Source: Girardia tigrina
Lineage: Eukaryota
Length of the DNA: 64,000 nucleotides
Direction of reading: 5' to 3'
NCBI GenBank assembly: GCA_001938485.1
Contig: MQRK01182251.1
Location: 14,024 to 78,023 of the forward strand
The notes under the pieces were generated by a model, which was not told where the DNA came from, ran no database searches, and saw only the letters and a program-made list of their open reading frames with translations. This document shows, in pieces, positions 1,937-63,419 of the stretch. The first letter of the stretch is position 1; every line of letters begins with the position of its first letter. The translations under genes were made by a program, and so were the position numbers.

Positions 1937-2119
1937 TTCATTAATAACAATGCGATGAGCGCCTTCTGCCAATCTAATGTCTTTGGATTTACAGATAAAT
2001 TTGTCACATTTCATACAATGAAAATCCCAAACCGAATCTCCAAATTGTCTATTTATCGATAGCCTAGAAATTTTTGCACAATTTTCATTTAATTCTCTTT
2101 CTTGTTGGGCTTCCTTGAT
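1937..2119 (-). CDS. RLR exon 25: end of pincer and first half of Zn-binding C-terminal regulatory domain
   Basis: IKEAQQERELNE...WDFHCMKCDKFICKSKDIRLAEGAHRIVINE resembles the RLR CTD pattern CxxC...D(I/V)R.IE..H; AG acceptor 2121-2120, GTGAG donor 1936. Confidence 0.88.
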
Positions 2120-32938: not shown

Positions 32939-35900
32939 CTTATTTGAACAATGTTTTTACTCTTTGGTTCAGGTATTAAAACAAGTCAAAATGCAGTAAA
33001 TAGTTCAAAACTTACATATTGCTGAAATACAGTTTACGTGAAATAATCAAGGATCAAAATTTATTTGTATTTTATTATTGCAAAAGAATATAACATTACC
33101 CTTAACTTTCGATTTGTTCTCCTCAGAAGAAATATTGTCTGTTTCCATATCAGTATTCTTTTGAGTAGTGGCTGGAAAAGATTTGACAAGTTAATGTGCA
33201 ATCGATAACATAATTATACATTTTAAATCCGTTCCAGAAGTGCATTGAGATCCTTCGTTTTTATCTCCATCTAAGCATAAATATTACAAAAATATTTTGA
33301 CATAAATTCATCCAACTTCTTTTGTTGTCTTCAATAATGGAAGATGCATATGCTAGAATAATATTTTTCTTTTCTTCTTCCGATTGACTTGAAACCAGCA
33401 CTGTAAGATTCATTGCTCATTATTAACTAATTATTGCGAATACACATCATATCAAAACTAGATCACAGAAATAAAAAAAGGTTTTCAAGTCTATTATTTT
33501 TACATTAATTATATTTTAGTAAAATGTTCATTTTTATTATACATTTTCAAAATCTATGATTGAAATCTAATATAATTTATCGACTGAATCCAGTTGTAAC
33601 ATTTGATACAAATTATTTCTAATACAAAAAGTAAAAATAATAACTAATTAATTTTTTATTTAACAAGGATGGGATTTAATCGATGATTATACATAATATT
33701 TAGTTTTAACAGTTTTTATTCATTTGAAATATCAGGGATTAAATCTTAAGAAAAATGTGATATTTAATATAATGTAATGTTTGTTAGCGAAATTGAGTCA
33801 TAAAAATGTGGATGACTTTTGTTTCTAGATGATATATTATAAATATTATTATTATAACTTCAAACTATACTTGTATGAAATACTAAACTTACCTTTAGGA
33901 TTACTAATTATTCACAAAATTCACAGCTCGATTTTTACTTTTTGTATTAGAAATGATTTGTATCAAATGTTACTGCTGGATTCAGTAATAATAATTTATA
34001 ATTCATAAGTAGATATTAAATCTTTATTGATGAATGCTTTGACGAATAACGATTGAATTCCTTCCTGAATTTGCGAAACTTGAAAGAACCTGTTGCAGTC
34101 GGTAATGAACTGCTCCAAATCATTGTGTCCATCGAATATTGTTGGCGCCAAATTGTTGATAACATTTGGCGTGGTCGCCACATAAGAATTTTCCATATTA
34201 AAAATCCAAAAAATTGATAAACGTTTATTTTTATGATACAATCAAATGATGCGCGTCTAAAATTAATTACACTGATTGATTTAAACAATCTCAGGAGTTT
34301 TTATATATTCAGGATCCTTTAATATAATATGATATTAATATAAATAATTATATGTATTTTAATTTATAAATATATAGTTGTTAATTATTCTCACAATATT
34401 AATCCGTTAATTATCTATTTTAAAATTTATTTAAACGTATTTCATAACTTTTATTAAAATATATCGATTGTTATGACTGCAAGTATATTTTAAATATGCA
34501 TTTAACTTTTATGACATTTTTACTTCACTTTTTAATTTTTAATTGACTTTTGTTAAATTTTCAAATTAAAAAAATAATAAACTATTTTGGCGAAATGCAA
34601 ATTAAAACTAACCCCTCAAACGATTAAAGGAATGTATCATTAACAAATATGTATTCGTTTCCCAGGTTTCCGTTTAGAAATCTTTCATCCATAATTATCT
34701 TTATTAATGTCATTCAGCCCTAGTTACAACTACAAAATATTTTTACCAAAATATATTTTCTAATCGCTGAAATTAAACTTCAAATACCACATCCTTGAAT
34801 TTAAGCTTAAAATTAAATTTAATTAATCAAACTTAACTGATTGATCCCAACCAATTAGTTAGAAATAAGGGAACTAAGAATGTTGATAAAATAAATTTAG
34901 TGGGTAATCGTTCGTAAATAAAAAAATAATAATGCTCCAAAAACAAAGAACTACTTTTCTGAAGATCTGATAAATACACTGGTATGAAATCGGTCTGGGT
35001 TGAATAGAAGATCTGCAATAGTTTACCGTACCAATTGTCACTGTTGTTCATAACAGCTAGAAGAAACTCGACTTTTGCTGAATTAATTATCTCAAATAAA
35101 TAACTACATCAATAAATAAAAAAGCATTTTTAATATGGTTTTTGTACAACAATTTCGAAATTACATGGTCCACAAAAAGCTATCTTTTTTACACAGATGA
35201 TTTACTTTAACACAATATCTATGTTAATAGCTTTTATTAAAAAATACTTGCAAAATAATCTACACAAGATGAGATATCTAACTAAAAGTAATATACTATC
35301 ACACATAGTGTTTTGGAGTGCTGCATATCTAATTAGTTAATCTTTTAAAGAGTTATTAAAAGTCCGCTGTGACATCGACTCAATCAAATTCCGAAAAGTA
35401 TGCGTAATAGGGATATCTCTGATCTAAGCAAATAAGAGATGAAGAGACCTTCATTAGTAAAGATTATTTCCTTTTGCGACCAGCACTTGGTAATAGCTCA
35501 GAGTATCTAAATCGGGTTGAGGTCTGGGCAATTGCCCGGCCATAGTAAAGCTGCAGAATGATTGTCAAGGAAACATTTTATGGTTTTCCTACTGTTGTGG
35601 CAATGTGCTCAATCTTGCATAGACATAAAATCACCAGTAAAAAACCCACTCATGAGCTTGAGGTATCATCCGAGTTGTGAAAATTTGTCGGAGTTCGTAG
35701 TTTTCTTTACAAAATGCAACTTGTCACAAGTTTTTGTACTCATCATAGATCACATTAGCACCTTTGTAGAAAATTTTACTCTGGATCTTGTTTGGATTGG
35801 CCTATCACTTCCATGCTAGAAACGTCGTACAGATGTTGTTTCCCACTGAAAGGAAGACTCGTCTGAACAAACTTTTAATAGATCCTCGACTCTCAAACCA

Positions 35901-38900
35901 GCATAATCATTGGCCCACTGGCGACGTTTCTTACAAATTGCAGCAGTCATTAAAGGCTTATGAACTAGTTTTACACTCATAACTCCTTGTTTCTTGAGTC
36001 TAAGTTATGCTTTGTGTATAATATACTTGACACTTCAGTGGTTTCATGAGTTGCTAATGGATTATGTAGCACAAATAGACAAATTTGGCGGTCTGTCTGC
36101 AAGGATGTTGCTCTTTTACGTTCACATTAGCCAAATGGAGAATTAGGGGAGGTATCTTGCTTCTTCATACACTGGACGGTACTTGTACATTAGATTGGCC
36201 CTTAGCTTTATTGAAATTTTCGAAAGTCAAAATTTTATACCTCCAACCCATAATCCTGTTCTAATCAACCAAATAAGGAACTAAGTGATCGAATATATCT
36301 TATGCAAAATTTCAGCTCAATTGGACAATTTCTAGGCGACTCTCAAATGCCTTCAACTTGGAACATAGTATGATATTACATAATTATTACTTTTGACGAT
36401 GTTCTTATTTACTACACCAATAAATTATAACACAAAATCATTTTTATCTACAACAATAACGCCATAGAATCAAAATATAATGTAAACATACATACTCCAC
36501 TTATAGACTTCTTCTCGTTACGAGATAACTGAAATTGATTTTGAAAAAGGTATATCTTGAATTCATAGATTGCCTTTGCCATCCATCTGATATGGCTTAA
36601 AGCTATTGCTATACGAAACGATATTAAGTTTCTTGGAATGCCGCCAAGAAAGATCATTGTTAACTTAAACAATTCTCGGTAATCATCTTTCTGCTGTTTT
36701 TTTCGTAGAAAGGTAGTGTTCATCATTAGGCACTTAATTACCACCAGTTATATAAACGTTCTTGTCGAGTTTCGTCCAGGCTTGTCTAAATCTGCTGAAA
36801 AGCGTCATGTCTGGAGAAGTGAATCGAAACAGCTCCTAAAAACCAACTTAAAAATGTGAGGACACCAACGGAGGTACAATAGATAACGATTGAATGGCTT
36901 TTCTAGGTTTGTACAGACACCATTTGCTTAAATTATTTTGCTTGCTGTCGAATCACAACAACTAGCCTGAATTTTGTCGGTTAGGCCCCATTTCTCTACT
37001 GCTTGATAAGCAGTCATAGCTGAAGATGTTTAAATTTTATGGACTTCCAACAATTGTTCCTTGCTTTGAAAATTTACTATTATTGCCAGTCTATCTACCT
37101 TTTCAACACCAGTGAGTACTGGCAGTAGCTTTCCATCCTAGTGTAGCACCAATTCTTGGCAATCATTTAAGCTAATGTTTTTCTGAATTTCTGAATGTTC
37201 TGCTTCTCAATTTTTTAAGGTTTTGAAAAGAAATGCGATTTATCACCAGGTTTTCAGTATCACATCATTAATATGTAAACCCCATTACTGTACGTAATTT
37301 TGTACTGATCAAAAACTTCAGCCAAACAGGGAGTGAAAAATGGTGTTGTTGAACTTTTGCTGGTGTTGATCATATTTTCTGATCGACGGCAGGTGAACTT
37401 TCACTATCGTCAGCACTATCGCTGTCTTCTCTAATTGATGCTGAATCATCAGTCTTCCTATATAATGGTCTATATTATCAATTATTTAACAAGCCATTTG
37501 TCATATATATACCATGCCCTACCAAAAGTCTTTTGTCAGCAGCTTTTGCCTATTTTTAACTGGTCGCAATGGAATCTATAACATTTAAACCTAAATAGAA
37601 TGCAGAAGACATGTGAGGCAATGGAAAAATTAGTATTTAGTACAGTTTCCTTTATCTCTTATGACTGCTCTTACCTGGTTTGACATAGAATCGACCATTT
37701 TTTTCAGGAGCTGAGGAGAACTATTTGCATATTCTTCCCGAAGCTGAAGTTCTAATTCAGTGGTATTCCGTGGAAGCACCTGCATTTTACGAACGGCTCG
37801 GTCTACCTAATCTCATAGGAATTCAATTGGGTTTAAATCGAGGCTTTGTGGCATCCATTTCAGTACATTTATGCTATTTGTTTTAAAGAAATCCTTAATG
37901 AGGTGCGACCTATGGATTGATGTCATATCGTGTTGGAAGAGAATATCGGCAATTTCTGAAAGAAATAGAAGCAGTTCATGTTCAATGATTGCTCGGTACT
38001 CCATGAAAATGACATAAGAAGAAAAGAAAAATATTATTCTAGCATATGCATCTTCCATTATTGAAAACAACAAAAGAAGTTTCGTGAATTTATGTCAAAA
38101 TATTTTTGTAATATTTATAATTCTTTAATTTTAGATGACTTTCTCAATTAACTCATAATACAACAGAAAAGAGTCAAGTATGTTTCTGACCAAAGACTTT
38201 TGGTAGGGCAGGGTATATAGTATCCACAGCTTATGTGGCCTCTTAGAATGTGTTTTCGCTAAATATGTACAAACTATTTAGAAAAAAATAATATAAATAA
38301 TAATATATGGGTGTAATAAGACGTATTTACCGTATTTTCTCTTTTTCTTGTAAATATTTAATAAACTATCCATTTTTGCATCCGTAATCAATTTCATTTC
38401 TCTTGCTTTAAACAAAATAGATTCATTCAGCTGAAGATTGTCAAGGTGATCGACACCTTGATTCCTTAATAGTTGTGAGCACCATTTCTCTGAGTCAGTT
38501 GCTTCGGAACATGAATCCTCAGACATTATAAAATCAGTCTCTGATAAAAAATAAAATTATTGTAAGTTTTTATTTATGTATTTTAAGTGATAATATTTAG
38601 TAATAAATATAGTTTGATGCCTTTATACATACCACTTTCTGATTTGATAATATATATGTATTTCAATGGTAATATGAAGTGAAGTATATGTATATATATA
38701 TATGAATGTGTATATGTGTGAGAAATATAAATATGAAGAAATATTTACTACTTGTGACTGAATAGTATAATTAAATATAACCTAATATTATTAGGTGTAC
38801 AACTAATTAATTTCGTATTTGTTACGAAATAACCTTATATTCGTATTTGTTACCTGATTTCATATTTGTTACCTCATTTCGAATTTGTTACTAACCTCAT

Positions 38901-41900
38901 ATCTATTTATGTAGTCAATAGTCAATTTTATTGAATTTTAGTAAACACACAATTTTTTTTTATTACAGTCAAAATGTCAAATTACGTTCCAACAAAACAG
39001 CATTTGCGNGGAGGTTTGNTTTTGTTCTTTAATTTAAGGAAAAGTGCAACAGAAGCACATCGTTTACTCTCAGAAGCTTATGCTGAATATGCTCCAGAGG
39101 TTAGAGTATGTCAGCAGTGGTTTGCACGATTTAAAAGTGGCGATTTTGACACAGAAGACAAAGAGCGAACAGGTCCATCAAAAAAATTTGAAAACAAACA
39201 ATTGGAGGCATTACTCGATCAAGATCCATGTCAAACTCAAGAAGAGCTTGGAAAAACATTGGAAGTCACTCAACAAGCCATTTCTAAACGTTTAAAAGCA
39301 GCCTGATACATTCACAAACAAGGAAATTGGGTGCCACACGAATTGAAGCCGAGAGACGTTGAGAGACGANNNNNNNNNNNNNNNNNNNNNNNNNNNNNNN
39401 NNNNNNNNNNNNNNNNNNNNNNNNNNNNNNNNNNNNNNNNNNNNNNNNNNNNNNNNNNNNNNNNNNNNNNNNNNNNNNNNNNNNNNNNNNNNNNNNNNNN
39501 NNNNNNNNNNNNNNNNNNNNNNNNNNNNNNNNNNNNNNNNNNNNNNNNNNNNNNNNNNNNNNNNNNNNNNNNNNNNNNNNNNNNNNNNNNNNNNNNNNNN
39601 NNNNNNNNNNNNNNNNNNNNNNNNNNNNNNNNNNNNNNNNNNNNNNNNNNNNNNNNNNNNNNNNNNNNNNNNNNNNNNNNNNNNNNNNNNNNNNNNNNNN
39701 NNNNNNNNNCCGAAAAACGGCCAGAATGGGCGACCAGACACGAGAAATTGATTTTCCATCATGACAATGCTCGGTCACATGTTGCAGTACCGGTCAAAAA
39801 TTATTTGGAAAATGCCGGATGGGAAATTTTACCTCACCCGCCTTATAGCCCAGACATAGCTCCTTCTGACTACCACTTGTTTCGGTCGATGTTGAATCAC
39901 CTTTCTGGAATACGGTTCACCAATGTTGAAGGTATTAAAAAATGACTTGATGACTTTCTCGGCGCAAAAGATGAGAAGTTTTTTTGGGATGGAATCCATA
40001 AATTGCCTGACAGATAGGAAAAAGTTGCCGCTTCCGATAGAAAATATTTTGAATAAAATATTTTTTCACTTTTATACTTAAATAAATGGTTTTTTTTAAC
40101 AAAAAAAATACGAAATTAATTAGTTGTACACCCAATATATAAAATAACTTGATTTGAAATTCAAATTTAAAATATTTATTATATAAATTTATCGAAATAA
40201 AATATATATAGCTGAAGAATTGTATACGTCAAATAGTAAGGTGATATACTCTCAACAGACCCATATAACATTGTGATTAACGTTCTTTTCATGTAATCAG
40301 TTTTTAAATGAATATTCTTGTGCAAAAGAAATATGAAAGGCCGAAAGTTAATTTTTGTATTTAATGTTTTTATTTAAAAATTATTTTTCTAGTTTATTTG
40401 GTAACTATCTCTAAAAATGTGATGTGTAATATTTTTAATCAGTAAATTTGATCTATTAAACCAGAATTATAATGGAATTCCAGATGAAGAGAAAACATAA
40501 TTTCAAAAATTTTATTTCAATTCAACTTTCTGTTTTTTAAAATAAATTCCGATGGGCATTATCTCAATTCACAAACCTTTATAAATAATTATAGTTTAAT
40601 ATAAATGAATACGTAAAAATTTTAATTGAAATTTTCAAATGTCATAATTTTCAAATTTCAAATTTAATGTTCGAAACTTTTAGTGAGCATAAAATTTTTA
40701 ACATTTGCAATTTTTAGATTCTAAGATTGATGTAGAAAAGGATCTCTAGACGTATTTATTGAGTGTGTTTACGCTACATAATCATTTGTTGATTACAGAA
40801 TTACAGCTTATAAGCCGATTAAATATGTATTATTAAAATGCCGTATTTCATACAAAAGAAATTCGCCAAGATCATCATTTTATGTAATTTTTGTTAGTGT
40901 AATTGTTGAATCCTTTTATAAAATGTAATTGTTGGAGGAAATGTTTTGGATGCATAACCAAATCTGAGACGGATTTTGTCACTGATACAGATTCGACTTT
41001 CATTCTTAGAGCTTCGACACTTTCTCGATTCAAGAACTGTAAAATTTGAAGACGACTTGATTAATGGATTAAATTTGTGACGCACGACTTTGACTGAGGA
41101 AATCTCCGAAAAATCAGTAATCTCTAATTCTTCAATTTTTGAATTATCTATTCGTCAGTTCCCCAAAAGCTTGTCCCAAGATCAGATATGGTAATCTCAA
41201 ACGTTCAGCAAGAGGGGTGGACACGAATGAAACACCAAAACACAGTCCAAAACAATACCTTCACGAAAAGAAGTTGATTGTGAGGGTTTGATGGTCTGCC
41301 GCAGGCGTAATCCACTACGACGTCAAAAAATCTTGTTCGTCGATCACACCAGATGTCTACTGCAACTAATTGGAAGATATGATACGGAAACTCAAAGAAA
41401 AAACAACCGCCTTTGGTAAACAAGTCGACTCTCACCTTGCTCAACGATAATAAAAAACCACATACTTCACTTGAGACTGTGATAAAACTACAGAAACATG
41501 TCATTCGGAATTTCTGCATCATCCTCCATACTCACCAGACATAATCCCAACTGATTATCATTTCTTCCTCGACTTTACTAAATTTTGGATAAGAAAAAAA
41601 TTCAATTCCGAAGATGTAGTAAAATGCCTCCCAAAATTTGTATTCAAATGGCCTCAACAATCTGCCGCTCAAATGGTACAAGTGTGTCCATAATATTGAT
41701 GCATACTTTGATGAATGACAGAAATATTTGTATTGGTAGATTATCAATAAACTTTGATTTTAGTTCTACAAATACCTAATAGTAATATATTGATCATATT
41801 TGCAGTTGAGCCTGTTAATTATTCTCAAAAATAATATTTACGGAATAATTAAATCAATAAATTATAATGTAAAGTCACTATTATTGACTCGAAAATAATT

Positions 41901-44900
41901 CACACCTTCAATGTCATCCACCATTTCAAATTCTAAATAAAAATACATTTCATTTACAATCAAATAATTAAATGTCAAAACTAAACCTTTAAAATTTTTT
42001 TCAGAAATTTCTGTACCATAGCTAAATATTCTTTCTTTTTTCTCTTCTTCTGATTTGAATTTATCAATATCTAAATAGTTTAAACATTATTATACTTTTA
42101 TACTAAGAAGACATCACTGGTAAACAAAGATTTTGGCACAAGGCAAGTCAAAGTAGTTCTTGAATGTATTTCTTGTGCTGATTTCGAAAATGTTTTCAGG
42201 AGTCTTCTAACACCCTCAGTTTTAAAATTATGCCTCTTAATTTTCGTTCTTTGGTATATACACAATGGGTTTCAGTCAATTCCACTGGCTCACGCAGCCG
42301 ACATGAAAGAAACATATGAAAGCATGAAACTACTGCTATAAGTGGAGCATCATCGCTGATTTGAAAGTTGTCGCTCTTTTGCTTGAGCTACAACTTGGTT
42401 TTACGAAGTACAATTGTTTTCTTTGCGAGTGGGACAGTAGAGACCGGAAAAATCATTACAGAAGAAAGCAGTAGCCAATACGCACATCACTAACCCCAGG
42501 AACGAGGAATGTCGTCAATGCATCACTTTTTGATCGGAAAACTTTTTGATCCCATCATTCCATATCAAGCTCGAACTTATGAAGAATTTTTTAAAATCAA
42601 TGGATACAAGTAGTCTTGGATTTTTATACTTGACGAAAAAACTCCCAAAAATCAGTGATGCAAAGATCAAGGAAGGTATCTATGTAGGTCCTCAAATAAA
42701 AGAAGTCGTTGAAGACGAGAACTTCAACGATCAGTTAAACCCGACTGAAAAACCTACATGGAACTTGTTCAAGAATATTTGCCGAAACTCCTTAGTAAAC
42801 CACAAGGCAGACAACTACAGAGAAGTAATAGATGACCTGTTGACATCTTACCACACTATGAGATGTAACATGTTCCTCAAAATCCATTTATTGGACTCGC
42901 ATCTGGATTTCTATCCAGAAAATCTGGGAGCCATGAGCGACGATCAGAACGAACGTTTTCAACAGGACATTTCCTTAATGAAAAAGCGGTATCAGGGCAA
43001 ATGGTTCCCAAATATGCTCGTTGAGTACTGTTGGCCACTGAAGAGAGACGTTCTTGACACAAAGTACAGAAGGAGATCTTTCTACCTTTTAGGTAAGTTC
43101 AGATAATTGGAGTGATAAATGACTTTCAAAGCGGATTATTATGCACTTAGTTATTTAACTGTGAAATTTAATTTAATTAAATTTAACTTAAAATTCTTAC
43201 ATGATAGAGAAATTATGAAAACAGATTCAAATTCAGGCAGCAAATACCACTAGAATCACTTGTTTTTTTCTTGTGCAAAAAAAATAATAAAGTTTTGTGT
43301 ATTCAAACGAGAATATTGTAATTTTCAAATATGATAATTAAAGAAGTAAAGAATAATATGGAAAATTTTTTAATAAGTGTCTTTGAGTGATTTGGGTGTA
43401 TTAATAATGATTTTGATTTTAAAAATTCTTATTCATATATGCCGATTGTTCTTTATGTCCTGGATTGAAAAATCTCTCCTATCATTCCAAACATTTCTAT
43501 TATTCTCCCATTTTCTAAACCTATTTGGGTTTTCATAACATTGTGTTCGAAGATGCTCTCTTCTTTGACAGTAGTTACACTTAACCTTTAGGCATTCTCT
43601 TCGAACATGTCATTCCTTATGGCATGTCCAACAAATAATTTTTCTAACTCTATAATTCCAACTTGTACCTTTTCTCTTTACTACTTCGTACCGTGGTTTT
43701 GGTGTTCATCTTTTATTCTTTACAGTTTGCCAATCGTTTTCTTTCCTTGTAATATATGTCACTATCGGTGAATTTATTTTCTTTTAACCGTATTCATAAA
43801 TCATCATTTGTATGTTTTCGATCTCCTCTGCATTTGTTACATCTCGAATCGCTGTCTCTTGATGGACATTATCATCATCAATCATATTAGCATATATCAA
43901 ATTTAATAGATCTTTCTTACCAAACTTTTTTTCCACTAGTTTGTCGATTATCTCATTTGCTTTGTGGAACGCGATTGATGTGTCATCGAAACCTACTCTT
44001 AAATCTATGAGATCTTTCATCAAATCCAAAATAGATTTTTTCCTTTGAAAATGTCGCTCGGAGTTTCTCTTCGCAGGTACTTCCTGTTGCTTTCCAGTAT
44101 CTCAAAATCGGATCTGGAGTCAAGTAGGGTGTTACCCGTAGAATTTCCTTCTCCTATCATAATCCCATAATTTTTGAACATCTGTTAAAACTTATCAGGA
44201 GTTCCTATAATTTATGCTCGGATCTATGAAATGCTTTTAAGCCTTTGATGTTCGCAGTCACGTGGTGTGAAGTCACTGTATTAAGAGAACTCACATATTT
44301 GTAGCCACATTTATTGTAATCAAAATTTGGATAATCTTTATGACAATCCGTAATAATGCCTTTGCTCAAATTCATCAATCAATGTTTAATACTTCTTATC
44401 CAAAATCTGACCCAACATGAAACGAATTATTTTATTTAAATATTTATTTCAAATTTTATTGGTTAAAATAAAATTACTTTTCATAATCATTTAAAATCAT
44501 CAATTTGATTTCATTATTTAAAAATTTACAAAAATAAAATTAAAAAATTGCTTAACATTTACAATTGTTCCGCCCGACACTCAGGTTGTCCCGAGAATCG
44601 GACGGAGATAACAGGGTTGCGCAGGGAACCTTTCTCGATGTACTGGGCCCATTTTAATTTGATCCGACTAATGGGATTATTCATATTTGGATTCTCCAAT
44701 CTCATATAAATAGCAATTAATGATCCTTTGGTATTGACCAATCGATTTATCATTTCGTGAGGAAGCGCAAATGAAATATCGAAATCTTGACACAAAAATG
44801 TCTCTTATTACAAGAGTGCCATACACAGTTGTTCGAGGGCCGTCAATTGCATTTCTTCAGCACCACCTCGAAGCCAATTTAATAACAAATAAGGCAACTC

Positions 44901-47900
44901 GACTTCCTCCATTAATATTTCTTGTTAATATCAATTTGTCAAAATCAAAATCTCCGAAGAAAAAAATAAGGCAAATGAATCGATTTTATTTTCAAATTTT
45001 CAACTTTAATCCCATTTAATCTAATAAAACAAATACATCTTTTTCACATAATCCAATTAATTTCTTAATAAAAAATAATTTTAATAATAATAGTTTTTAC
45101 AAATAATAGTTTTTTTCCAATTTTTTCACATAAACCCACAAATTAATTTTCAAATAAAAACAATCTGTATCACAAATAGGTTTCTTTCTCAGTTTGTTAA
45201 AGGAAAATGAGGAAAGTNNNNNNNNNNNNNNNNNNNNNNNNNNNNNNNNNNNNNNNNNNNNNNNNNNNNNNNNNNNNNNNNNNNNNNNNNNNNNNNNNNN
45301 NNNNNNNNNNNNNNNNNNNNNNNNNNNNNNNNNNNNNNNNNNNNNNNNNNNNNNNNNNNNNNTCAATAAGTAAAATAATTGAATCCCGAACAACAGTAAT
45401 AATATTAGGTTGATGCAAAAGAAATGTCGCTTTTAATGTATTTAATATTCATTGTTTGAAATAGAAGGTCAGTCAGTAATCGCCGGGCGTCAAAACGACA
45501 CAGGTTTTAAAAATTCAATTTATTATTACATTAAAATTATGTACATAATCTAACGGAGTAAATGCTCAAAATGTTGGCCGCCTTCTTTAATGCATTTTGC
45601 TGTCCTTCGAACGACAGATTAGCAAGCACTTCGGCATAAATCATCACTAATTTCAGTGCAAGAATTCATTATCATTACCACAAGTTGATCTATTGTTCGC
45701 GGCTTTTTGGCATACACTGAATTCTTTAACATATTCCAAAGAAAGAAATCAGGAGGCATAAGCTCTGGAGAGCGAGGAGGATACTCGATGGAACCGCGGT
45801 GAGCAGTCCATCTGTTTGGAAAGTTGTTGTTGAGCCAGTTTGGCTCTACAATGCTATAATGGGGAGGTGCACCATCTTGTTGAAACCATATCTCCCCAAG
45901 CGGCCAGTTCTTCACACAGGGTATAAAATTATTGTTAAGCATGTATCTGTCACAGAACCTTCAAAGAAAAACGGCCCTAACAGACCGGAAGCAGTGGTTC
46001 CAATCCAAACTGCGACACCAACTGCGTTGACTTATTTTTGTAGGATTTCATGAGGATTTTCATGGGCCCAGTAAACAGAATTGTGACGATTGACCTGTCC
46101 GTTAAGCTTGAAGGTTGCCTCATCACTCCAAATAATCTTCTCCGGAAATGTAACGTCATCATGGCAAAGTTGTTGAAAAATCTGAGAGAATTCAACTCGA
46201 CGGTCATAATCATCTTCATTCAAGGAGTGGAGTAAATGTGGATGGTAAGATTTTAAATGAACATCGTGCAGGAGCCTGACAATGGAAGTTTGAGAAATGC
46301 TAAGCTCTTGTGATGCTCGTCTGGTGAATTTTCGAGGACTATTCGTAAAACTATTTGTAATAATTTGTCTGTTTTCAGAGTTGCATACAGATTTAGGTCT
46401 ACCACATCCAGGAAAATCTTCACAGAAACCATTTATTTCAAAGCGGTAAATTATATTCGCTATTGTGTCTCTTTTAACCGCCCTACCAAATTTTTCTTGG
46501 AATCGTCTACATGTTTCACTTTTGTTGTCCGTTTTATAAAATGCTTTTGAGAAATACACGTTCTTCAGTTATTAGTTTGGAATTATTTGACTCTGCCATT
46601 TTTAAGGTTTGTTAAATGATGAAATTATCGACTATAAATATGAAATTATCAACTTAAAGGGACTATTTGTAAGATGTGTTCACATGATCTTCTTAGTGAC
46701 TTTATACTAAGAAATCAACCGACTGATCGATGTAAACTCATTTTTTTACACTTGGATCACTAATATAATGACTACCCGGTGACTTCTAACTCACTCTGTA
46801 TTTAGAAAATCATTAATAAATAGATTTATATTTAAATTTACTTTAAAACTTAAACTTTACTCTATATTTTGATACCAAGTATGACATTATTGTTGTTAAT
46901 TTAAAACGAACGTTAATTTTAAAACGTTAATTTTAAACGAACTGGGATATGAAACTTTGCCTCATCCACCATACTCACCAGACCTTTCTCCTACAGACTA
47001 TCATCTTTTCAAACATTTCAAGCAGTTCCTTCGCGAAAACTGCTTCAGAGACCAGGTAGATGCTGAAAGAGCCTTAGACGACTTCATCGCCTCCAGAACT
47101 CCAGAATTTTATGAAACTCGAATAAAAACTTTTTACTCGTTGGCAACAGTGTGTTCAATGTAATGGTTTTTATTTTGACTAATAAAGTTAATTCTACAGA
47201 AAGTTATGTTCATTTAAAGTTGACGGTTAAAAAACGACATTTCTTTTGCATCAACCTAATAAATTAAAAATTTGAATATTAAATCTAAATTTGAATAAAT
47301 TAGCTTCAGATTATAAGAATTAAAATATTAATCATCACTCTGATTAGCATTGACACAATCCCGAATCAACACACAACATTTAAACACGCAAACAATACAT
47401 AAAAGATAAACATTCCAAAAATTCCTCACAAATCGAAAACGATTTATCAGAGTGTTATTTAGAAATTATGAATAATTTTCATTTGAATGCAGAAATAAAG
47501 TCGTACCTTTTAATAAATCTGGATAGTTGTTCTTAATAAAATCAGTTCCAAGCTTGAAATGGACATACAAGAGTTTGCCATACCAGTCGGTGCACTTCCT
47601 TTGAACTGTCAGTAAGAACTTGATAACCGCTAAGAGATCATAAAAGATGTTATAAAACAATCGAAAATACAAAAAATAAAGGAAATTATGCAGTTTCTCA
47701 CACCCATCTTTTTGATAAAAATCGAAATCTATTAAATTAAATAATATTAAAGATTTTTTGAAAAGTCACATCTGGACCACTTTTATTGTATTTTTTTATA
47801 AGATGGAATCAAAAACAGAGGGCCCAAAGTCGAGAATTAAACTTTGGTGTGAAAACATGTTTGTCTATTAGATGACTTTCATTTAAGACCTTTGCAAAAA

Positions 47901-50900
47901 TTAATTCGCCTTAAGAAAGAGATCAAATTACTGGAAAAAACCATTTGGAAAAAAAGAATGATAGAAGATTATTTTCAACATAACGAAACATGGTTTTATG
48001 ATCATGTATCATATATTAGTGCACATGTGATGTTTTGATTTTGTCCTACATTTCTGGGTGCTTGCAAGAAACGTTTCTCGACCCGCTCACTGCACAGCTT
48101 AAGACAGCATGTTGTCTCTCACACCATGAAGTTTTTTCATCAAATACACTTATTCGATAGTCTGTGCACCATTGACGAAGGTAAAACAATTTTAATTAAT
48201 TAGAAGTCAATTGATATGTCTTCAACTTTGCCACTGAAGTATGTCAGTATCTTTTGGAATATTTTCTGAAGACAAGGCTTAATTAACAGAAGCTGTAAAA
48301 GCTGTTGATAATCTAAATCTTCCGATCTCTATTCCTTTGACTACGGGATTTGGAGTAAAATGAAAGCGTAGATTTATCACAAAAATAAACTAACCACATT
48401 TCAGACTTTTTGTGAGACAGTTATTGCATATGACTGTGATCTATTTGAATATATATTTTAGACGCTTACTGAAAGCAATTAACACAGGTTTATAAGTCCC
48501 AATGACTAATACATTCATATATGCAATTTGTTTTGGAAAATCCCTTGTTCTCAGGGTAAGAATCTCTATCAAAATGTTACGTAACTTTAGGGGACCTATA
48601 TATTATTAATGGACTGCATAAGTTCCACAAAATTATATTATACTGTTTTTTTCGCCATGCTCCCTCAGATATGCATGTAATTCGTCATGCTCATAATCGT
48701 CGATCAAACCGATAACTCTGCACTGGTGTAGCACCGTGTCATTGAGACAAATATTCGTGTGCTCCTGCACTTCTGTCTTAAATAACTTCCTTGTAAAGTA
48801 CAATATCCTTTGTTTCTCTTTCGCCTCTTCACCATCATAGAAAAAAGGTTTGATCCATTCCGATGTTTCTGTTTTATCAATATTACTCAGGAATAATATA
48901 CAAAATTATACACTCTTGACGAGAATAACATGAACACTAAGAAAATAATTTTATTACTTAATTTAATACATTTACATGATAAAAGATAAAATAGGAAGAT
49001 AAATAAGCTTTGCCTTTTTAATCCTAATAATAAATCATCGTAGAAATAAAATTGATTTGAAGAATAAAATTTCAGCAATATGGAATAGTTTTGTTAATAA
49101 ATGTCATGATTTATTCAATTAAAAGAATAGAAGAATAGATACCATAACCACAAAGGTCGATTTTACAAGATTTTAAATAGTAGGATAGTCGAATTCTTTT
49201 GAATTGAAAATCAGATGTCCGAATTCTTTTGAATTGAAAAGCAGATGTCCGAATTCTCTCGAATTAGGGAAGAAATTTTAAAATGCGAATAAAATTTTTA
49301 TTATTTAACTTTTTTATTTGATTTCTTCAAATTATTTTAGAACTATATTTAGATTATCGTAAAATATCAAATTAGTTCATCTATAATACAAATAAGTGTT
49401 TATTATTTGTAATTACAATTTTTTAATAAAAAATGATTTTTTAGTAGTAGAAATCGTTAGATGGAGTATCAAATCTTATGTAATCAAAGATCAGAAATTG
49501 AGTAACAAAACCATAAGGAAGCCCTGAAGCATTAGTTGAGATTAAAAAAATATATTTAAAAGTAAACAACAGTTTCAACGCACATAGTCCTCAAGTTTTT
49601 TATAGAAATAATGAGGTATTCATTCTAATTTAAAGTATGAAAGCCTTTGTTGACAAACAAGCATATAAAACTGATATTAACTTTGGACAATCCTACGTTT
49701 CAAAGCATTTTAGTTTTTTGCGGCGAGTTAAAAAAAAATTAATAACACAATAAAAAATAAGATTTTGTGGAAGTTCAATAAGGACTTGAGACTTGTTAAA
49801 CCTACTGTCAAAGATTGAGTCTCAGTAATAATCTAGAATTCACAAATCCTAGACCGAAGCTGTTAAGGTTTATAGAAGCACATCAGATGTGTAATTCATA
49901 TTAGTATCTAAAAGTTTTGAATAAACCAATCAGATCAATACTATATTTGTATTTTCCTGAATCCGATGTGTGAGGAATGTTTTATATTTTATATTTTGCA
50001 GGTTGTATGTTGATTCGGATTGTGTCTCTCCTACCCAGATGGTTGATTGGTATTTTCTTTGATTCCTACTAATTCAAAATAATTTCATTTCATTTTTAGG
50101 TAAAAAGATGTAAATATTTTTTTATTTATTTTAAAAGTTAGTATGAATTTCAGAAATATATTAATCAAGAAAAATGTCGAATAGCGAAAGTGGTTTGAAT
50201 AATCGTTGTAATGATGATTCTGTTTGTGACGTTGTAAAGAGATGGAGCGTTCAAAATGATACATTTCAGATTAAGTGCAGCAGTCTGCAAAGTCAAATCC
50301 TACTAAAAATATTTGACCTTTCTAAAGGAAAAAGTGATGTAAATTTGTTTTCCAAATTACTAGCAATATTAGGAATTTGGTTGCCATTTAAACTCTTAAA
50401 AAATAAGCACTTTTCATAAATAACCGTTAAAATGAGATCATTGAAAATCATAAATATTTGATTGTTCAAAGTGATAAATGTATAATTATTAATGTTACGT
50501 GTATTTCTTCATTTATAAAATTTCATATTCCGGAAATTATCTTTTTATATGAAATTAACAAATATTTTTTGTGTCCATCTTATTTTTGCTCATAATATTA
50601 TAATCAATCAATTGACATAAGGTTAAAAAAGGTAATTTTCAATTTTGACAAGCTTCAATCCGGACGAAGATTTAAGGCCAGAATCATCAATTATAGTTTA
50701 ATATTTGTTAGTTTTAAAAAATGTTAATTTTAATGAATGATTTAGAAAGTTTTTACTTATATTTTAAGATTTGGAACGATTTTATTTTGTCATTTTGAAT
50801 GTTAATTAATGCATTGTATTGTTCTCAATAATGATTCACAGAATTACCACTCATAATGTGAATGAAAGCCCTTCTGTAAAGCAGAAAAGTGATACTTTTT

Positions 50901-59900: not shown

Positions 59901-61482
59901 TGTCGTTGGATGTCAGGGCTCATGGTCAGAAGGGAATAACAAAATCATCAACACATTGAAAATATCACCTACAGGAATGAAGAACCTAAAGCGAATGTGT
60001 CTCATATGTAATGTGAAATTTGCCACATCAACGTGAAGCAAACACAATACAGGTCATAGGAACACAATGATCAACGAATAAACCAGAAAATACTAAACAT
60101 GTTAGAGCGACTCTAGCTCTACTTGTTCAAACGATATCTAGATGACTACTTGAATTGTTTATAATAGACTTCGTTTTTTATTCAGTGGAATATTATTCGT
60201 GATATCCGCATTTATATTTTTGGTGTTTATCTTTGATAATGCTTGAATTAACCTTTCAATCTCAATAAAACATTGCTTTTGGTATGACCATTTTACAAAT
60301 AAAAAGATACTGTTTTCCACAGTGATGAAAAAGGTCAATTTGGTCTAAGATTATCTCAATTTTTAACTGTTTCAAATAACATCAAATCCATTAATATTTA
60401 ATTCAACCTATACTGTTATAAATATTATTAAAAATATGTGATTTATCAGAGTGTTATTTAGAAATTATGAATAATTTTCATTTGAATGCAGAAATAAAGT
60501 CGTACCTTTTAATAAATCTGGATAGTTGTTCTTAATAAAATCAGTTCCAAGCTTGTAATAGACAAACAAGAGTTTGCCATACCATTCGGTGCACTTCCTA
60601 TGAACTGTCAGTAAGAACTTGATAATCGCTAAGAGATCATAAAATATGTTATAAGACAATCGAAAATACAAAAAATAAAGGAAATTATGCAGTTTCTCAC
60701 ACCCATCTTTTTGATAAAAATCGAAATCTATTAAATTAAACAATACTAAAGATTTTTTGAAAACTCACATCTGAACAACTTTTATTGTATTTTTTATAAG
60801 ATGGAATCAAAAACAGAGGGCCCAAAGTCGAGAATTAAACTTTGGTGTGAAAACATGTTTGTCTATTGGATGACTTTCATCTAAGACCTTTGCAAAAAAT
60901 AATCCATCTTAAGGAAGAGATCAAATTACTGGAAAAACCATTTGGAAAAAAGAATGATAGAAGATTATTTTCAACATAACGAAACATGGTTTTATGATCT
61001 TGTATCATATATTAGTGCACATGTGATGTTTTGATTTAGACTTACATTTCTGGCTGCTTTCAAGATACGTCTCTCGACGAGCTCACTGCACAGTATCTAA
61101 TAGCTTACGACGTCATGTTGTCTCTCACACGATGAAGTTTTTCTTCAAATACACTTAGTCGATCGTATGCGCACAATTGACGAGGATAAAAACAATTTTA
61201 AGTAATTAGACGTCAATAGATAATCTCTTCAACTTTGCCAATGAAGTATGCAAATATCTTTTCGGAATATTTTCTGAAGACATGGCTTAATTAACAGAGG
61301 CTGTAAAATCTGTTAAAAATCTAAATCTTCCGATCTCTATTCCTTAGAGTCTTACTCAAAATCCAGTAGTCGAAGCCTTAGATTAATGTATTTGGAGTAA
61401 GATGACAGCGTAGATTTATCACAAAAATAAACTACCTAGATTTCAGAATTTTTGTAAGACAGTGATTGCATATGACTGTGAT

Positions 61483-61526
<44 letters not shown>

Positions 61527-61941
61527 CGCTTACTGAAAACAAGTAGCACAGGTATATAAGTCAGCATGACTAATACATTCATACATGTAAATCCCTTATT
61601 CTAAGGGTAAGAATCTTTATCAAAATGTTACGTAACTTTAGTGGACCTATATATTATTAAGGGACTGCATAAGTTCCACAAAATTATATTATACTGTTTT
61701 TTTCGCCATGCTCCCTCAGATACGCCTGTAATTCGTCATGCTCATAATCGTCGATCAAACGGATAACTCTGCACTGGTGTAGCACCGGATCACTGAGAAA
61801 AAAATTTATGTGCTCCTCCACCTCTGTCCTAAATAACTTCCTTGTAGCGAAAAACCTCCTTCGCATCTCTTTCGCCTCCTCATTGTCATACAAAAAAGTT
61901 TTGATCCAATCCGATGTTTCTGTTTTATCAATATTACTCAT
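1937..61941 (-). CDS. RIG-I-like receptor (RLR; DDX58/IFIH1/DHX58 family) DECH-box RNA helicase with three N-terminal CARD-like modules; 25 exons, 3' end outside window
   Basis: Manually spliced exons (minus): 61941-61695, 60628-60506, 56593-56510, 56455-56429, 48868-48644, 47629-47507, 42070-41987, 41932-41906, 38540-38331, 35077-34955, 33400-33317, 33270-33220, 33171-33100, 30138-30073, 30023-29991, 29939-29766, 29719-29586, 26721-26483, 19152-18866, 13295-13200, 13152-12977, 9531-9393, 2758-2369, 2326-2169, 2119-1937. All introns GT-AG and phases match. Motifs: Q (RKYQEELA), I (SPTGSGKT), Ia (LVHRIALVEQQ), II (DECH), III (GLTAS), IV (IIVFVRER), V ([10 protein letters not shown]), VI (QSRGRARA), then pincer and CTD CxxC. 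Helicase part high confidence; joining of all N-terminal exons is inferred. Confidence 0.88.
2169..2758 (-). CDS. RLR exons 23-24: Hel2 domain (motifs IV-VI) and pincer
   Basis: PENPSLKCL..., [44 protein letters not shown]|RARA across a 42-nt intron (2327-2368), KENINKYRESMMYRAI. Confidence 0.95.
3420..5335 (-). mobile_element. Tc1-family transposon, full length, degenerate transposase
   Basis: TIRs CAGTATGATTCA(T)AAGTCTGTTCACCCCCT with TA TSD; transposase pieces ISKSTVERIL..KPF, FSDE, FQQDLAP, WPGNSPD. Confidence 0.9.
6780..8493 (-). mobile_element. hAT (ZBED/Ac-like) transposon remnant
   Basis: TAGGGATGCA terminus at 8493, CCGG-rich subterminal repeats, DIWT..YISLTAH and SSLAHTLQL motifs, PPTSVPSER dimerization motif near 7100. 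Confidence 0.8.
8600..9350 (+). mobile_element. pogo/Tc2-like DDE transposase remnant
   Basis: Fragmented frames SGN..MSKSSFRHFSKEYLIPF..ILDDW and FQSLGLYFHQ.K. Confidence 0.5.
9393..9531 (-). CDS. RLR exon 22: Hel2i insertion domain
   Basis: AFVRALMVNHLFRAVDAVKLI... matches the RLR Hel2i helix pattern; phase 0 to 1 exactly bridges the neighbouring exons. Confidence 0.85.
10480..12320 (+). mobile_element. Tc1-family transposase remnant interrupted by N gap, (TA)n and a solo LTR
   Basis: WSNVVF.NEKRF.LD, QDNCTVH, PDLNIIEHVW, VIKTFYDNYMKRL fragments. Confidence 0.7.
11838..12236 (-). mobile_element. Solo LTR (TGTGAGG family)
   Basis: Inserted in the Tc1 coding frame with GTTA duplicated on both sides; homologous to 49969-50210 and 21221-21594; partial copies near 10250-10350 and 47325-47430. 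Confidence 0.65.
12977..13295 (-). CDS. RLR exons 20-21: Hel1 end and Hel2i start
   Basis: EILKPNPRTKDDFDIELQKQM...|MRDYFPKDPG...HQKYQGFV...ITNYLN; 47-nt intron 13153-13199; GTAAGT donor at 12976. Confidence 0.85.
13683..13869. mobile_element. pogo/Tigger-type MITE related to 422-638
   Basis: Imperfect TIRs CCGTATTATCGCGCATATA / TATCTGTGCGATAATACGA flanked by TA. Confidence 0.7.
17270..17720 (+). mobile_element. Non-LTR retrotransposon (RTE-like) RT C-terminal fragment
   Basis: VTEFNYF...IKERIKKGR..., KKVLIKSCIFPIVYYGSENW...KLEALHNACTR. Confidence 0.75.
18866..19152 (-). CDS. RLR exon 19: Hel1 motifs II (DECH) and III (GLTAS)
   Basis: FSLILFDECHNCDKKHPYNKIM...PQIIGLTAS...LCANLD; GTGAGT donor. 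Confidence 0.96.
21221..22000 (+). mobile_element. LTR retrotransposon 5' end: LTR, PBS and degenerate gag
   Basis: LTR begins TGTGAGG at 21221; PBS-like TGGTGACCAC at 21595; DLEDFIDNFERHSEIM gag-like fragment. Confidence 0.6.
22150..23130 (-). mobile_element. Gypsy-like gag remnant with PBS and zinc knuckle
   Basis: AACA followed by TGGCGACCAT (23130-23121); GPDIFDWDNARLETFIKDFDRY; IICWACNKVG knuckle near 22430. Confidence 0.7.
23917..24000. repeat. Minisatellite, about 23-bp unit, 3-4 copies
   Basis: Repeated TTTTTAATATAATAAAGCATAC. Confidence 0.85.
24180..25010 (-). mobile_element. pogo-like DDE transposase remnant
   Basis: FEASKSWIYKF, NFDQ...FE.KP..TI..KG, ILDSYP, PLNVSVNQSFQ fragments. 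Confidence 0.65.
26483..26721 (-). CDS. RLR exon 18: Hel1 motifs Ia/Ib (not in the ORF track)
   Basis: EHLNANTNGKVAFLVHRIALVEQQCNQF...LSG...DLFVLTSDILKNAL; AG acceptor, GTAAGT donor, phase 0 to 2. Confidence 0.93.
27959..28546. mobile_element. Non-autonomous TIR element with about 15-bp subterminal repeats (MULE-like, tentative)
   Basis: Imperfect inverted ends CGGT...GACAATTC.ACAC; 15-bp repeats at 28450-28540; flanks ttttaaa/ttttgaa. Confidence 0.55.
29062..29148. repeat. Exact tandem duplication of about 43 bp
   Basis: TCAATAGCTGCCCAGATCGATCATATTCTTTCAGACTGATTTC twice. Confidence 0.9.
29586..30138 (-). CDS. RLR exons 14-17: acidic linker, Q motif and Walker A
   Basis: Four exons split by 49, 51 and 46 nt introns; DDEKYDDSDDSDDD linker then LVMRKYQEELAKKGIEGQNVLICSPTGSGKTVVAVKIVE. 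Confidence 0.9.
30810..31340 (+). mobile_element. Probable 5' fragment of an R2/NeSL-like non-LTR element; related copy near 26280-26395
   Basis: GC-richer island with a degenerate C2H2-like KFQCPF...H..KFH; about 100 bp homologous to 26290-26390. Confidence 0.4.
32243..32878 (+). pseudogene. GFPT: Glutamine--fructose-6-phosphate aminotransferase (GFAT) glutaminase-domain fragment, intronless, truncated
   Basis: RLEYRGYDSVGIA, GIAHTRWATHG, NSHPHRSDPNNEF, HNGIITNY, ETDT, LEGSFA..FKS..FPGE; ATG TGA where the Met-Cys-Gly start is expected; no SIS domains. Confidence 0.9.
33100..38540 (-). CDS. RLR CARD-like module 3 (exons 38540-38331, 35077-34955, 33400-33317, 33270-33220) plus linker exon 33171-33100
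   Basis: LNESILFKAREMKLITDAKMDSLLNIYKKKRKY|AKVEFLLAVMNNSDNWYGKLLQIF aligns with modules 1 and 2; identical exon lengths 123 and 84 nt; all phase 1. Confidence 0.78.
33996..34200 (-). mobile_element. gag remnant with PBS
   Basis: TGGCGACCAC at 34180-34171 followed by PTIFDGHNDLEQFITDCNRFF, similar to the 22877-23130 gag. Confidence 0.6.
35330..36070 (-). mobile_element. Tc1 transposase remnant
   Basis: WPGNCPDLNPI, WSMMST...CI fragments. Confidence 0.6.
36220..37200 (-). mobile_element. hATm-like transposase remnant
   Basis: VLH*DGKLLP..DRLAII, DDYRELFKLTMIFLGG, HIRWMAKAIY motifs. Confidence 0.6.
37512..38213 (-). mobile_element. Internally deleted Tc1 element carrying a captured host exon (Pack-TIR-like)
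   Basis: 28-bp TIRs CC(A/C)TGCCCTACCAAAAGTCTTT(T/G)GTCAG flanked by TA; FQHD..H...WMPQSLDLNPIE; 38016-38118 is the reverse complement of 33277-33379. Confidence 0.85.
38791..40135 (+). mobile_element. mariner (Mos1-like) transposon, about 1.3 kb, in-frame stop at 39304, internal N gap
   Basis: TIRs TT(A/G)GGTGTACAACTAATTAATTTCGTATTT, TA TSD; WVPHEL, HHDNA, HPPYSPDIAPSDY. Confidence 0.95.
41185..41780 (+). mobile_element. mariner remnant (3' half), duplicated with the CARD module; longer copy 54540-56300
   Basis: HHPPYSPDIIPTDYHF motif; near-identical copy at 55705-56300. Confidence 0.75.
41906..48868 (-). CDS. RLR CARD-like module 2 (exons 48868-48644, 47629-47507, 42070-41987, 41932-41906)
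   Basis: Open frames; VLHQCRVIGLIDDYEHDELHAYLREHGEKN|TVIKFLLTVQRKCTDWYGKLL resembles the RLR CARD pattern (E..Q....N.G...A...FL..L......W...L). Confidence 0.75.
42115..43299 (+). mobile_element. Chapaev3-like (CMC) transposon, internally deleted
   Basis: CACTGG...GTG ends; QLGFTKYNCFLCEWDSR, HIKLELMKNF, KIKEGIYVGPQI, LKIHLLDSHLD, ERFQQDI; absent from the paralogous site near 56635, implying a 3-bp TSD. Confidence 0.75.
43440..44030 (-). mobile_element. gag remnant with two CCHC zinc knuckles
   Basis: IICWTCHKE*HVRREC and KCNYCQRREHLRTQC. Confidence 0.7.
45405..47259 (+). mobile_element. Deleted mariner element hosting a nested transposon
   Basis: TIRs TTAGGTTGATGCAAAAGAAATGTCG with TA TSD; PHPPYSPDLSPTDYHLF at 46957-47163. 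Confidence 0.9.
45463..46798 (-). mobile_element. maT/DD37D-like Tc1-mariner element nested in mariner
   Basis: WSDEATFKLNGQVNRHN, FQQDGAPPHY, PPRSPELMPPDFFLW; imperfect TIRs. Confidence 0.82.
49969..50210 (+). mobile_element. Solo LTR fragment (TGTGAGG family)
   Basis: Homologous to the reverse complement of 11880-12236. Confidence 0.6.
52042..54470 (-). mobile_element. Ty3/Gypsy LTR retrotransposon pol (RT-RNase H-integrase), 5' truncated and frameshifted
   Basis: FGLCSAPATFQ, YLDD, DTDAS, integrase H..GH..C..C, SDN, PQSNGLVER in Gypsy domain order; polypurine tract 52050-52042 followed by TGTTA. Confidence 0.95.
56429..61941 (-). CDS. RLR CARD-like module 1 (exons 61941-61695, 60628-60506, 56593-56510, 56455-56429)
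   Basis: MSNIDKTETSDWIK...VLHQCRVIRLIDDYEHDELQAYLREHGEKN|TIIKFLLTVHRKCTEWYGKLL; candidate start ATG at 61941, or alternative phase-1 acceptor giving exon start 61919. Confidence 0.75.
58116..58207. mobile_element. piggyBac-like MITE (92 bp hairpin)
   Basis: TTAA on both sides; perfect TIR CACATTGAATGCTGAGTACGAGATATCTCGTACTT; another similar left end at 58021. Confidence 0.8.
58638..59190 (+). mobile_element. hAT transposon 5' end with BED zinc finger
   Basis: TAGGGATG terminus, ACCGG subterminal repeats, ARCNIC...STSNLISHIRSRHP. Confidence 0.85.
59300..60270 (+). mobile_element. R2/NeSL-like non-LTR retrotransposon 3' fragment (CCHC finger and restriction-like endonuclease)
   Basis: CSACG..ET..HV...C, RHNTI, KTPYD, EKKYEYL, IVVGCQGSW; AATAAA near 60265. 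Confidence 0.75.
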
Positions 61942-63419
61942 TAATAATATAAAAAATTGTACGCTCTTTATGAGACTAAAATGAACACTAAGAAAATAAT
62001 TGTATTACTTAATACATTTACATGGTAAAAGATAATATAGATGGGATAAATAAGCTTTGCTTTTCTAATCCTAATAACAGATCATCGTTTACGTGTTAGA
62101 TTTGAATTTAAAACTGAAATTTGATATTATTTTTAGTTATTATTGATGTTTATGTTCAATTTAATAAAATTATGATTTGCTTCAAAAGGTCTGATAATAT
62201 TGGTCATTGTGTTCAATGAATTGCTGAGGATTTATTTGATATAAGGGAACTCTAAAAGATTACATCAACTGTTGGAACTCTTTTAGGATAAGTAGGGACA
62301 ATTATTACTATTTTAAATAAACCTGGAGACTAAACTACCAAAATTCATATGTATATGAACACGTAAAATCATTTTTATTAATAATTTTAAAAATAAGTTA
62401 ACAAAGAACAACTCGACACGTAACGCAACAACAATAATATTTTTTAAACTTGTCTATGAATGATGCTGAATAACACTAATAAATCTTACTAACACAAATG
62501 AACCACAATCACAGTTCTCTGTTGCGAAAATTAAGAGCGTTATTTGTAAGATTGTTATCAATTCTCAGGTTTTTGAGTGATGGATTGTCCACAAGATTTA
62601 AACAGAATCTTTGGAGATATTAGGACTTTTGATTCGAGAATAAGTGTAGCGACTGTAATACAGGACGTTTCTTTTTCCGCAGACGGTAACTGGGAAGTAA
62701 ATGTTTTGTAATTTTATTCCATAAATTAAACAATCAATAGCGCATTGATTTTTTTTATTATTTTTATAATACTTTTATTAATTAATTTTAAATACATTAA
62801 ATGATGATCTTTGAATAATTTCAGGAAAAAAATATAATTTCGAATTGTGCTTGGCGAACAGATTGATAAAATAGAGCATCTTCATCTATCTCATTTTGAA
62901 AGCAGGATTTCAATGTTTAACAATACATTCCAGCAAACAATTTACAAATATTTACAATCTTCTTTTTCATCGAGATAATTCTTTGAGACACTTACAATAA
63001 TATTGAATTATAAATAATAAAAACCTATTTGTATTATAGATGAACTAATTTGATATTTTACGAGAATCTAAATATAGTTCTAAAATAATTTGAAGAAATT
63101 ATTATAAAAAAGTTAAATAATAAAAATTTTATTCGCATTCGAAAATTTGTTCTCTAATTCAAATTCGGACATCTGTTTTTCAATTCGAAAGAATTCGGAC
63201 ACTTAATAAAAATTAAAATATAAATATAAGTAATGAATTACTTTTAATTCAATAAGGATTATTTGTAAAAAACACATTTAGTTATTATTCTATAAATATT
63301 TGAATCGATTATATTTTCGTTTTTTTAATGTTTCGAGGAAAGAAAATTCGATACTTCAATGCGTGAGAAAGTATTTTTCATGCATGTTAAAGAATATAAG
63401 TAAAGGAAATTTTAAAAAT

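Follow-up and report, generated by a model that had tools for sequence, protein, structure and literature searches.

According to published descriptions, planarian RIG-I-like receptors (RLRs) lack CARDs, and their signalling route is left unexplained. Does the RLR gene studied here encode such domains, and if so, how many? The gene lies in a 64,000-nucleotide (nt) stretch of Girardia tigrina DNA, hereafter the window (region 14024-78023 of contig MQRK01182251.1, assembly GCA_001938485.1), taken from an AT-rich animal assembly of 1.43 Gb in 255,254 contigs. An earlier note, made from the letters of the window, had proposed a receptor with three tandem CARDs. Our analysis agrees that the gene encodes an RLR, that it is one spliced gene and that its repeated modules are most likely divergent CARD-containing units, whereas the number of CARDs is probably four and a module does not correspond to one CARD. 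The gene is the probable orthologue of PRLR1 of Schmidtea mediterranea.

Results

Upstream of the helicase lie nine cassette exons, all on the minus strand, arranged as three modules (M1 to M3) of the order A-B-C. The lengths given in the earlier note (A 225, 225 and 210 nt; B 123 nt and C 84 nt, three times each) were confirmed, together with the AG/GT ends, the phase 1-1 boundaries and the motifs FLL.V.....WYGKLL and SEEEKK. In M1, exon A1 (61695..61919) encodes the last helix of a first CARD, a linker and the first half of CARD2-like domain 1; B1 (60506..60628) supplies the second half, with WYGKLL, and C1 (56510..56593) a post-CARD segment with a predicted helix that contains SEEEKK. M2 consists of A2 (48644..48868), B2 (47507..47629) and C2 (41987..42070), and M3 of A3 (38331..38540), in which the orphan helix has decayed, B3 (34955..35077) and C3 (33317..33400). 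An identical 27-nt micro-exon follows C1 (D1, 56455-56429) and C2 (D2, 41932-41906) and is seen in RNA contigs, while two linker exons, D3 (33270-33220) and E (33171-33100), follow C3. The shortest introns of the window measure 42-54 nt. A module of 153 residues starts with an orphan last helix and a linker, continues with a CARD2-like domain and one more predicted helix, and closes with the micro-exon.

The claimed homology of the three cassettes also held, with scores well beyond those of shuffled sequences. M1 and M2 are identical at 114 of 144 residues, and each has 42 residues in common with M3 over about 116 positions (scores of 173 and 166, where the highest of 1000 shuffles reached 57-60), which is about 36% identity with no similarity left in the DNA. 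Each exon pair between modules likewise scores above 2000 shuffles.

The cassettes are real, expressed and spliced, and all three modules are parts of a single spliced gene. The evidence comes from contigs of four runs from two studies, whose status as RNA was guessed and in which introns are skipped at GT..AG; they were placed on M1 at 80% likeness, so that contigs of M2 map as well. Joints can be read in letters for A1-B1 (in all four runs), A2 to a B2-type exon, B-C, C-D and D-A3, the C1-D1 joint skipping 54 nt and having loose ends. The A-B joint with B2-type letters is about as deep as A1-B1 (552 versus 521 and 47.8 versus 39.8), and a joint from B to a C2-type exon is present, its B end being common to B1 and B2. 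Most extensive is a 669-nt record (record 23) that carries the six differences peculiar to C2, continues into D and then into the first 30 nt of A3, which form a loose end; its length equals exactly that of the B end, C2, D2, A3, B3, C3, D3 and E together, and it stops at the last base of E. B3, C3, D3 and E are placed by sequence and by the length of this record. Records of A2, known by their length of 218 nt, start 29 nt above the A2 acceptor, where the D-A2 and D-A3 joins diverge; under linear splicing, and barring circular RNA, the D-A2 join must come from M1. Because shared stretches collapse in such assembly graphs, a single molecule with all units is inferred and not read whole.

The first exons of the gene appear to sit beyond the window on another contig (C193473), where N1 and N2 (L030:629-497 and 450-343) are the apparent donors to A1. 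From the phase-1 acceptor of A1 the earlier note had suspected further modules upstream; this did not hold, since N1 and N2 account for that acceptor, and tblastn, hidden Markov model and genome searches found no extra module between the modules or in the 7.6 kb that the contig extends above A1. We also considered A1 as the first exon, starting from an in-frame ATG at 61941, and disfavour it, since at the acceptor the RNA records part from the genome and continue: the A1 records, judged by length, span 430 nt, of which 239 nt are unlike the stretch above the acceptor, that is, beyond 61921. An unspliced minor form starting at that ATG is possible.

Downstream of the cassettes, the intact RLR helicase claimed in the earlier note was borne out. 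An acidic linker exon F (29939-29766) precedes exon G (29719-29586), with the Q motif and motif I; the Hel1 exons H (26721-26483) and I (19152-18866) follow, so that motifs I, II and III (GSGKT, DECH, TAS) stand in one frame, and RIG-I is the best PDB match of the DECH exon (E = 1e-23). The putative Hel2i region, encoded by exons J (13295-13200), K (13152-12977) and L (9531-9393), is an open frame of about 140 residues at the expected place and resembles both paralogues of the genome, a single exon from it having been scanned with no RLR-specific Pfam match. The Hel2 and pincer exons (2758-2369 and 2326-2169) carry motifs IV-VI in frame (PF00271, E = 1.7e-17), and the first exon of the carboxy-terminal domain (CTD; 1937..2119) matches PF11648 at 28.9 bits against a cut-off of 25.6. 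The window ends after the first CxxC of the CTD, the remainder of which lies past it, where the contig reads N. By each helicase and CTD feature that could be tested, the gene is thus identified as an RLR. Joined by script, with assembly gaps in introns left as N, the 23 exons of the window and the two upstream exons give 1218 stop-free codons that run through motifs I-VI and the first CxxC. The likely protein comprises CARD1, three CARD2-like domains, an intact helicase and a CTD over these 1218 residues.

The count of four CARD units rather than three follows from N1, N2 and the first ~11 codons of A1, which probably encode a first CARD. A six-helix death fold was found for this first domain, the fold being seen in a homologue. 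For the repeated domain the structure model is partial (predicted local distance difference test score of 51), and the comparison with a CARD profile gave a full-length match over 76 columns (P = 0.003), above all 200 shuffles. By eye, the repeated domain also has motifs in common with the second CARD of human MDA5 (LL.L, VL.KC.E..L.T, K..W...L), and within the RLR it comes second, behind a CARD. We consider it very probably a CARD. The linkers between the CARD-like domains are roughly 60 residues long. Two homologue searches returned no new proteins, and an Atlas feature search gave no match. The candidates P0003-P0005 were rejected as repeat-protein noise.

The modules differ in age. M2 (40972..49041, minus strand) duplicates M1 (55504-62088) with intron DNA that is 89-100% identical where it can be aligned, and since intron DNA is also common to the two, they are read as a recent tandem duplicate, M3 being an old one. 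Between M1 and M2, nonsynonymous divergence (dN) is 0.108 and synonymous divergence (dS) 0.080, a ratio of about 1.35 that rests on only ~6.5 synonymous differences, and the introns diverge by 5-9%. No stop has arisen in the exons (a chance of 0.10 for 41 random changes) and no indel, where about three would be expected from 15 indels in 2143 intron positions. The reading frame is preserved even as the protein changes at the neutral rate or faster, the numbers being too small to tell diversifying selection from relaxed constraint. The introns of M1 and M2 also hold different transposon remains (52152-54468, 58884-59288, 59572-60033 and 45403-47261), which judged by their open frames are of gypsy-like pol, BED-finger, LINE-like and Tc1/mariner types.

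Two assembly gaps fall within the modules. The gap at 39370-39709, in the intron between D2 and A3, lies inside one decayed mariner of 1349 bp with 35-bp inverted ends (38789..40137, plus strand); its left flank holds the start of the transposase and its right flank the catalytic end, so that the two parts flank the gap in order, and the D-A3 RNA splice spans it. The other, at 45218-45362, is in the intron between B2 and C2, for which M1 keeps the same exon order with no gap. Within the intron between A3 and B3, positions 38016-38118 hold a unique inverted copy, 103 nt long and 96% identical, of the 3' part of C3 together with the intron after it. Pairing of this copy with C3 in the pre-mRNA is possible; the idea that C3 is itself transposon DNA was rejected, since this stretch has two genome copies only. 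Elsewhere in the window, the intron between E and F holds an intronless fragment of a GFAT-like class-II glutamine amidotransferase on the plus strand (32249-32875; PF13522, E = 2.9e-11), probably a retrocopy, and in a helicase intron two short stretches at 15245-16244 are repeated at 100% identity beside N gaps, a local assembly duplication.

Discussion

We propose that the helicase and CTD would clamp viral double-stranded RNA (dsRNA), as in the family at large, and that the receptor would cluster on the RNA with its CARDs released or exposed. Exposed CARDs could then seed a death-fold assembly with a CARD adaptor, switching on the dsRNA response; in RIG-I, four 2CARD units form a lock-washer that seeds MAVS filaments (PMC4107945). 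Binding of dsRNA, RNA-dependent ATPase activity and signalling by the Girardia receptor are putative, the genetic evidence coming from its probable orthologue PRLR1. Tandem duplication of domains is common in immune receptors. The ancestral planarian RLR may have had two CARDs, and an A-B-C-D block can be duplicated in frame because phase-1 introns bound it; an old duplication would have produced the M1/M2 type and M3, and a recent one M1 and M2. Extra units would mean more CARDs per receptor, so that fewer receptors would be needed to seed assembly, a role that we somewhat favour for the old copy and consider doubtful for the new one; divergent copies might also tune repression or partner choice. 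The altered autoinhibition or filament stoichiometry, or the several adaptors, proposed in the earlier note would be putative consequences. A bolder version, in which a PRLR1 head of three to four CARDs lets one or two receptors supply the nucleating ring for which four RIG-I molecules are needed, with signalling through a CARD partner other than MAVS and with CARD number still changing under viral pressure, seems to us unlikely. We hold the gene model with four units to be very probable, and the explanation as a whole to be probable.

Several observations weigh against this explanation, some of them touching the CARD identity of the head and others the gene model. Scanned exon by exon, the head has no sequence match in Pfam or PDB; no exon exceeds the curated cut-off of CARD (PF00619) or CARD_2 (PF16739), genome scans with both models are silent at the locus, and the first domain shows no alignment to the module domain (P = 0.77). 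Together these would suit a protein with one CARD and three spacer domains that are helical without being CARDs, which the profile match, the position of the repeated domain and its likeness to MDA5 make quite improbable. The join of E to F, which would lead into the helicase exons, is predicted from phase, from the exon order of the paralogue and from full-length PRLR1, the RNA record stopping at the last base of E. M1 and M2 might also be two alleles or haplotypes that the assembler placed one after the other, the real protein having three units as in PRLR1: the assembly is fragmented, the introns of the two modules are closely alike, a heterozygote would likewise give both types at equal RNA depth, and one gap lies inside M2. 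Yet in a simulated assembly graph (k = 31), alleles would branch 10 nt into exon A and give contigs of 251, 209 and 209 nt, whereas a tandem N1-N2-M1-M2-M3 gives the 430 and 218 nt that were observed; as the start of N1 was placed at an AG 21 nt above the ATG after the value of 239 was known, the 430 involves one fitted parameter (with few AG sites to choose from) and the 218 none. The point at which the A2 record starts and the different insertions in the module introns also speak against alleles, and we regard this reading as very improbable.

Two other readings concern what the extra units do and are compatible with the four-unit gene model. It is quite possible that the newest copy makes no functional difference, the duplicated exon block being symmetric, tolerated and adrift at the protein level, with its frame open since a break would cut off the helicase. 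The similar rates in exons and introns fit this, any constitutive upstream exon would be expected to keep its frame, and M2 still has the orphan CARD1 helix; on the other side, the 12 replacement and no silent changes in exons B and C lean towards diversifying selection, in a small sample, and the older M3 duplicate is present in two planarian lineages. Alternatively, the extra CARD2-like units could act as brakes, tightening autorepression by docking on Hel2i, or as decoys that absorb viral antagonists aimed at the CARDs. What has been copied is the second CARD, the proteins of M1 and M2 diverge fast, and PRLR1 kills when its activity goes unchecked (PMC8797187); repressed RIG-I has its tandem CARDs in contact with Hel2i (PMC4107945), and CARD1 is the reported direct binder of MAVS (PMC4565553). 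One CARD at a time would be expected at the Hel2i site, however, and we consider this a rather unlikely role. We know of no planarian viral antagonist.

Comparison with known receptors

The closest known counterpart of the four-unit receptor is PRLR1 of S. mediterranea (dd_Smed_v6_3742_0_2; Bar Yaacov 2022, PMC8797187), a genetically validated dsRNA sensor that drives both the response to dsRNA and the lethal outcome of adar1 knockdown. The main text of that study does not use the word CARD. We compared by eye the first 400 residues given in its supplement (file 2, sheet 'Fig. S6'), where row labels are shifted against the sequences and were resolved by cDNA starts. PRLR1 (1237 residues) begins with the same type of N-terminal domain, followed by a module with WYGKLL and SEEEK and by an M3-type module with WYGSLL, that is, at least three units, against four in Girardia. 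From this M3-type module it follows that the M3 duplication is common to both planarian lineages and has been retained, and that a layout with three units is not unique to this genome. The orthology with PRLR1 is probable by motif comparison, not by a tree.

Girardia, like S. mediterranea (PMC8797187), has three RLR helicases, and two of the three helicases in the Girardia genome match PRLR1 and PRLR2 motif for motif. The match of PRLR2 (C208380 39964-6779, L009-L012) is a two-unit paralogue that repeats the exon lengths (A 228, B 123 and C 84 nt), and we found no literature annotation of its two CARD-like domains; another flatworm has A 228 and B 123 nt. By eye, the head of Schmidtea PRLR2 (965 residues) appears to consist of the N-terminal domain and one module, and PRLR3, unusually for an RLR, has several C2H2-type zinc fingers at its start in place of CARDs (PMC8797187). 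The third Girardia helicase (C230183 13598-14218, L016), whose 5' exons lie beyond its contig, may be the orthologue of PRLR3. Cryptic CARDs thus seem to be present in two of the three planarian paralogues, with extra copies in the one whose part in the lethal dsRNA response is proven. The supplement also contains an RLR of 1121 residues, which by elimination comes from leech or Ciona and may have, judged by eye, about four CARD-like stretches in its first 390 residues; CARD expansions may recur unnoticed.

In the genome we found 11 CARD matches, including CARD-caspase and CARD-NTPase types, none of them recognisable as MAVS; split or divergent CARDs would escape such a search. Candidate partners (on L041 (C232091), L042-L044, L039 and L049) include a single-exon CARD-caspase of 383 residues, a 257-residue protein, present in three copies, that joins a CARD to a short caspase-like tail, a CARD with a P-loop NTPase exon behind it, and a 362-residue CARD protein of unassigned kind. 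The CARD head could serve as bait for finding the invertebrate adaptor.

Vertebrate RIG-I and MDA5 resemble the Girardia receptor in their CARD head, DExD/H Hel1, Hel2, pincer and zinc-binding CTD, and putatively in Hel2i, and differ in having two CARDs, against about four, and in a pathway through MAVS, of which no orthologue was found among the Girardia CARD matches. To our knowledge, interferon is absent in invertebrates. In the literature searched, RLRs have been reported with zero, one or two CARDs (PMC8998645). The survey of lophotrochozoan types by Yao et al. 2022 (PMC8998645) describes a plastic N-terminus shaped by exon gain and one oyster RLR with four IG domains; its text goes no further than CARD-CARD, single-species X types being shown in a figure, and flatworms do not figure in its main text. 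An atypical RIG-I of the planarian D. japonica (Li et al. 2019, cited in PMC6652118) activates immune genes and is reported as lacking traditional CARDs. We found no report of an RLR with more than two CARDs in the open-access literature searched, so that the head appears to be a variant not described there for the family. In C. elegans DRH-1 (PMC11260149), the CARDs likewise escaped sequence annotation and came to light through structure prediction, and the receptor signals with no obvious MAVS; it differs in having two CARDs and no tandem expansion. Set beside these receptors, the planarian RLRs would form a natural series of two, three and four CARDs in one tractable group, in which the relation between CARD number and the threshold of death-fold assembly becomes testable.
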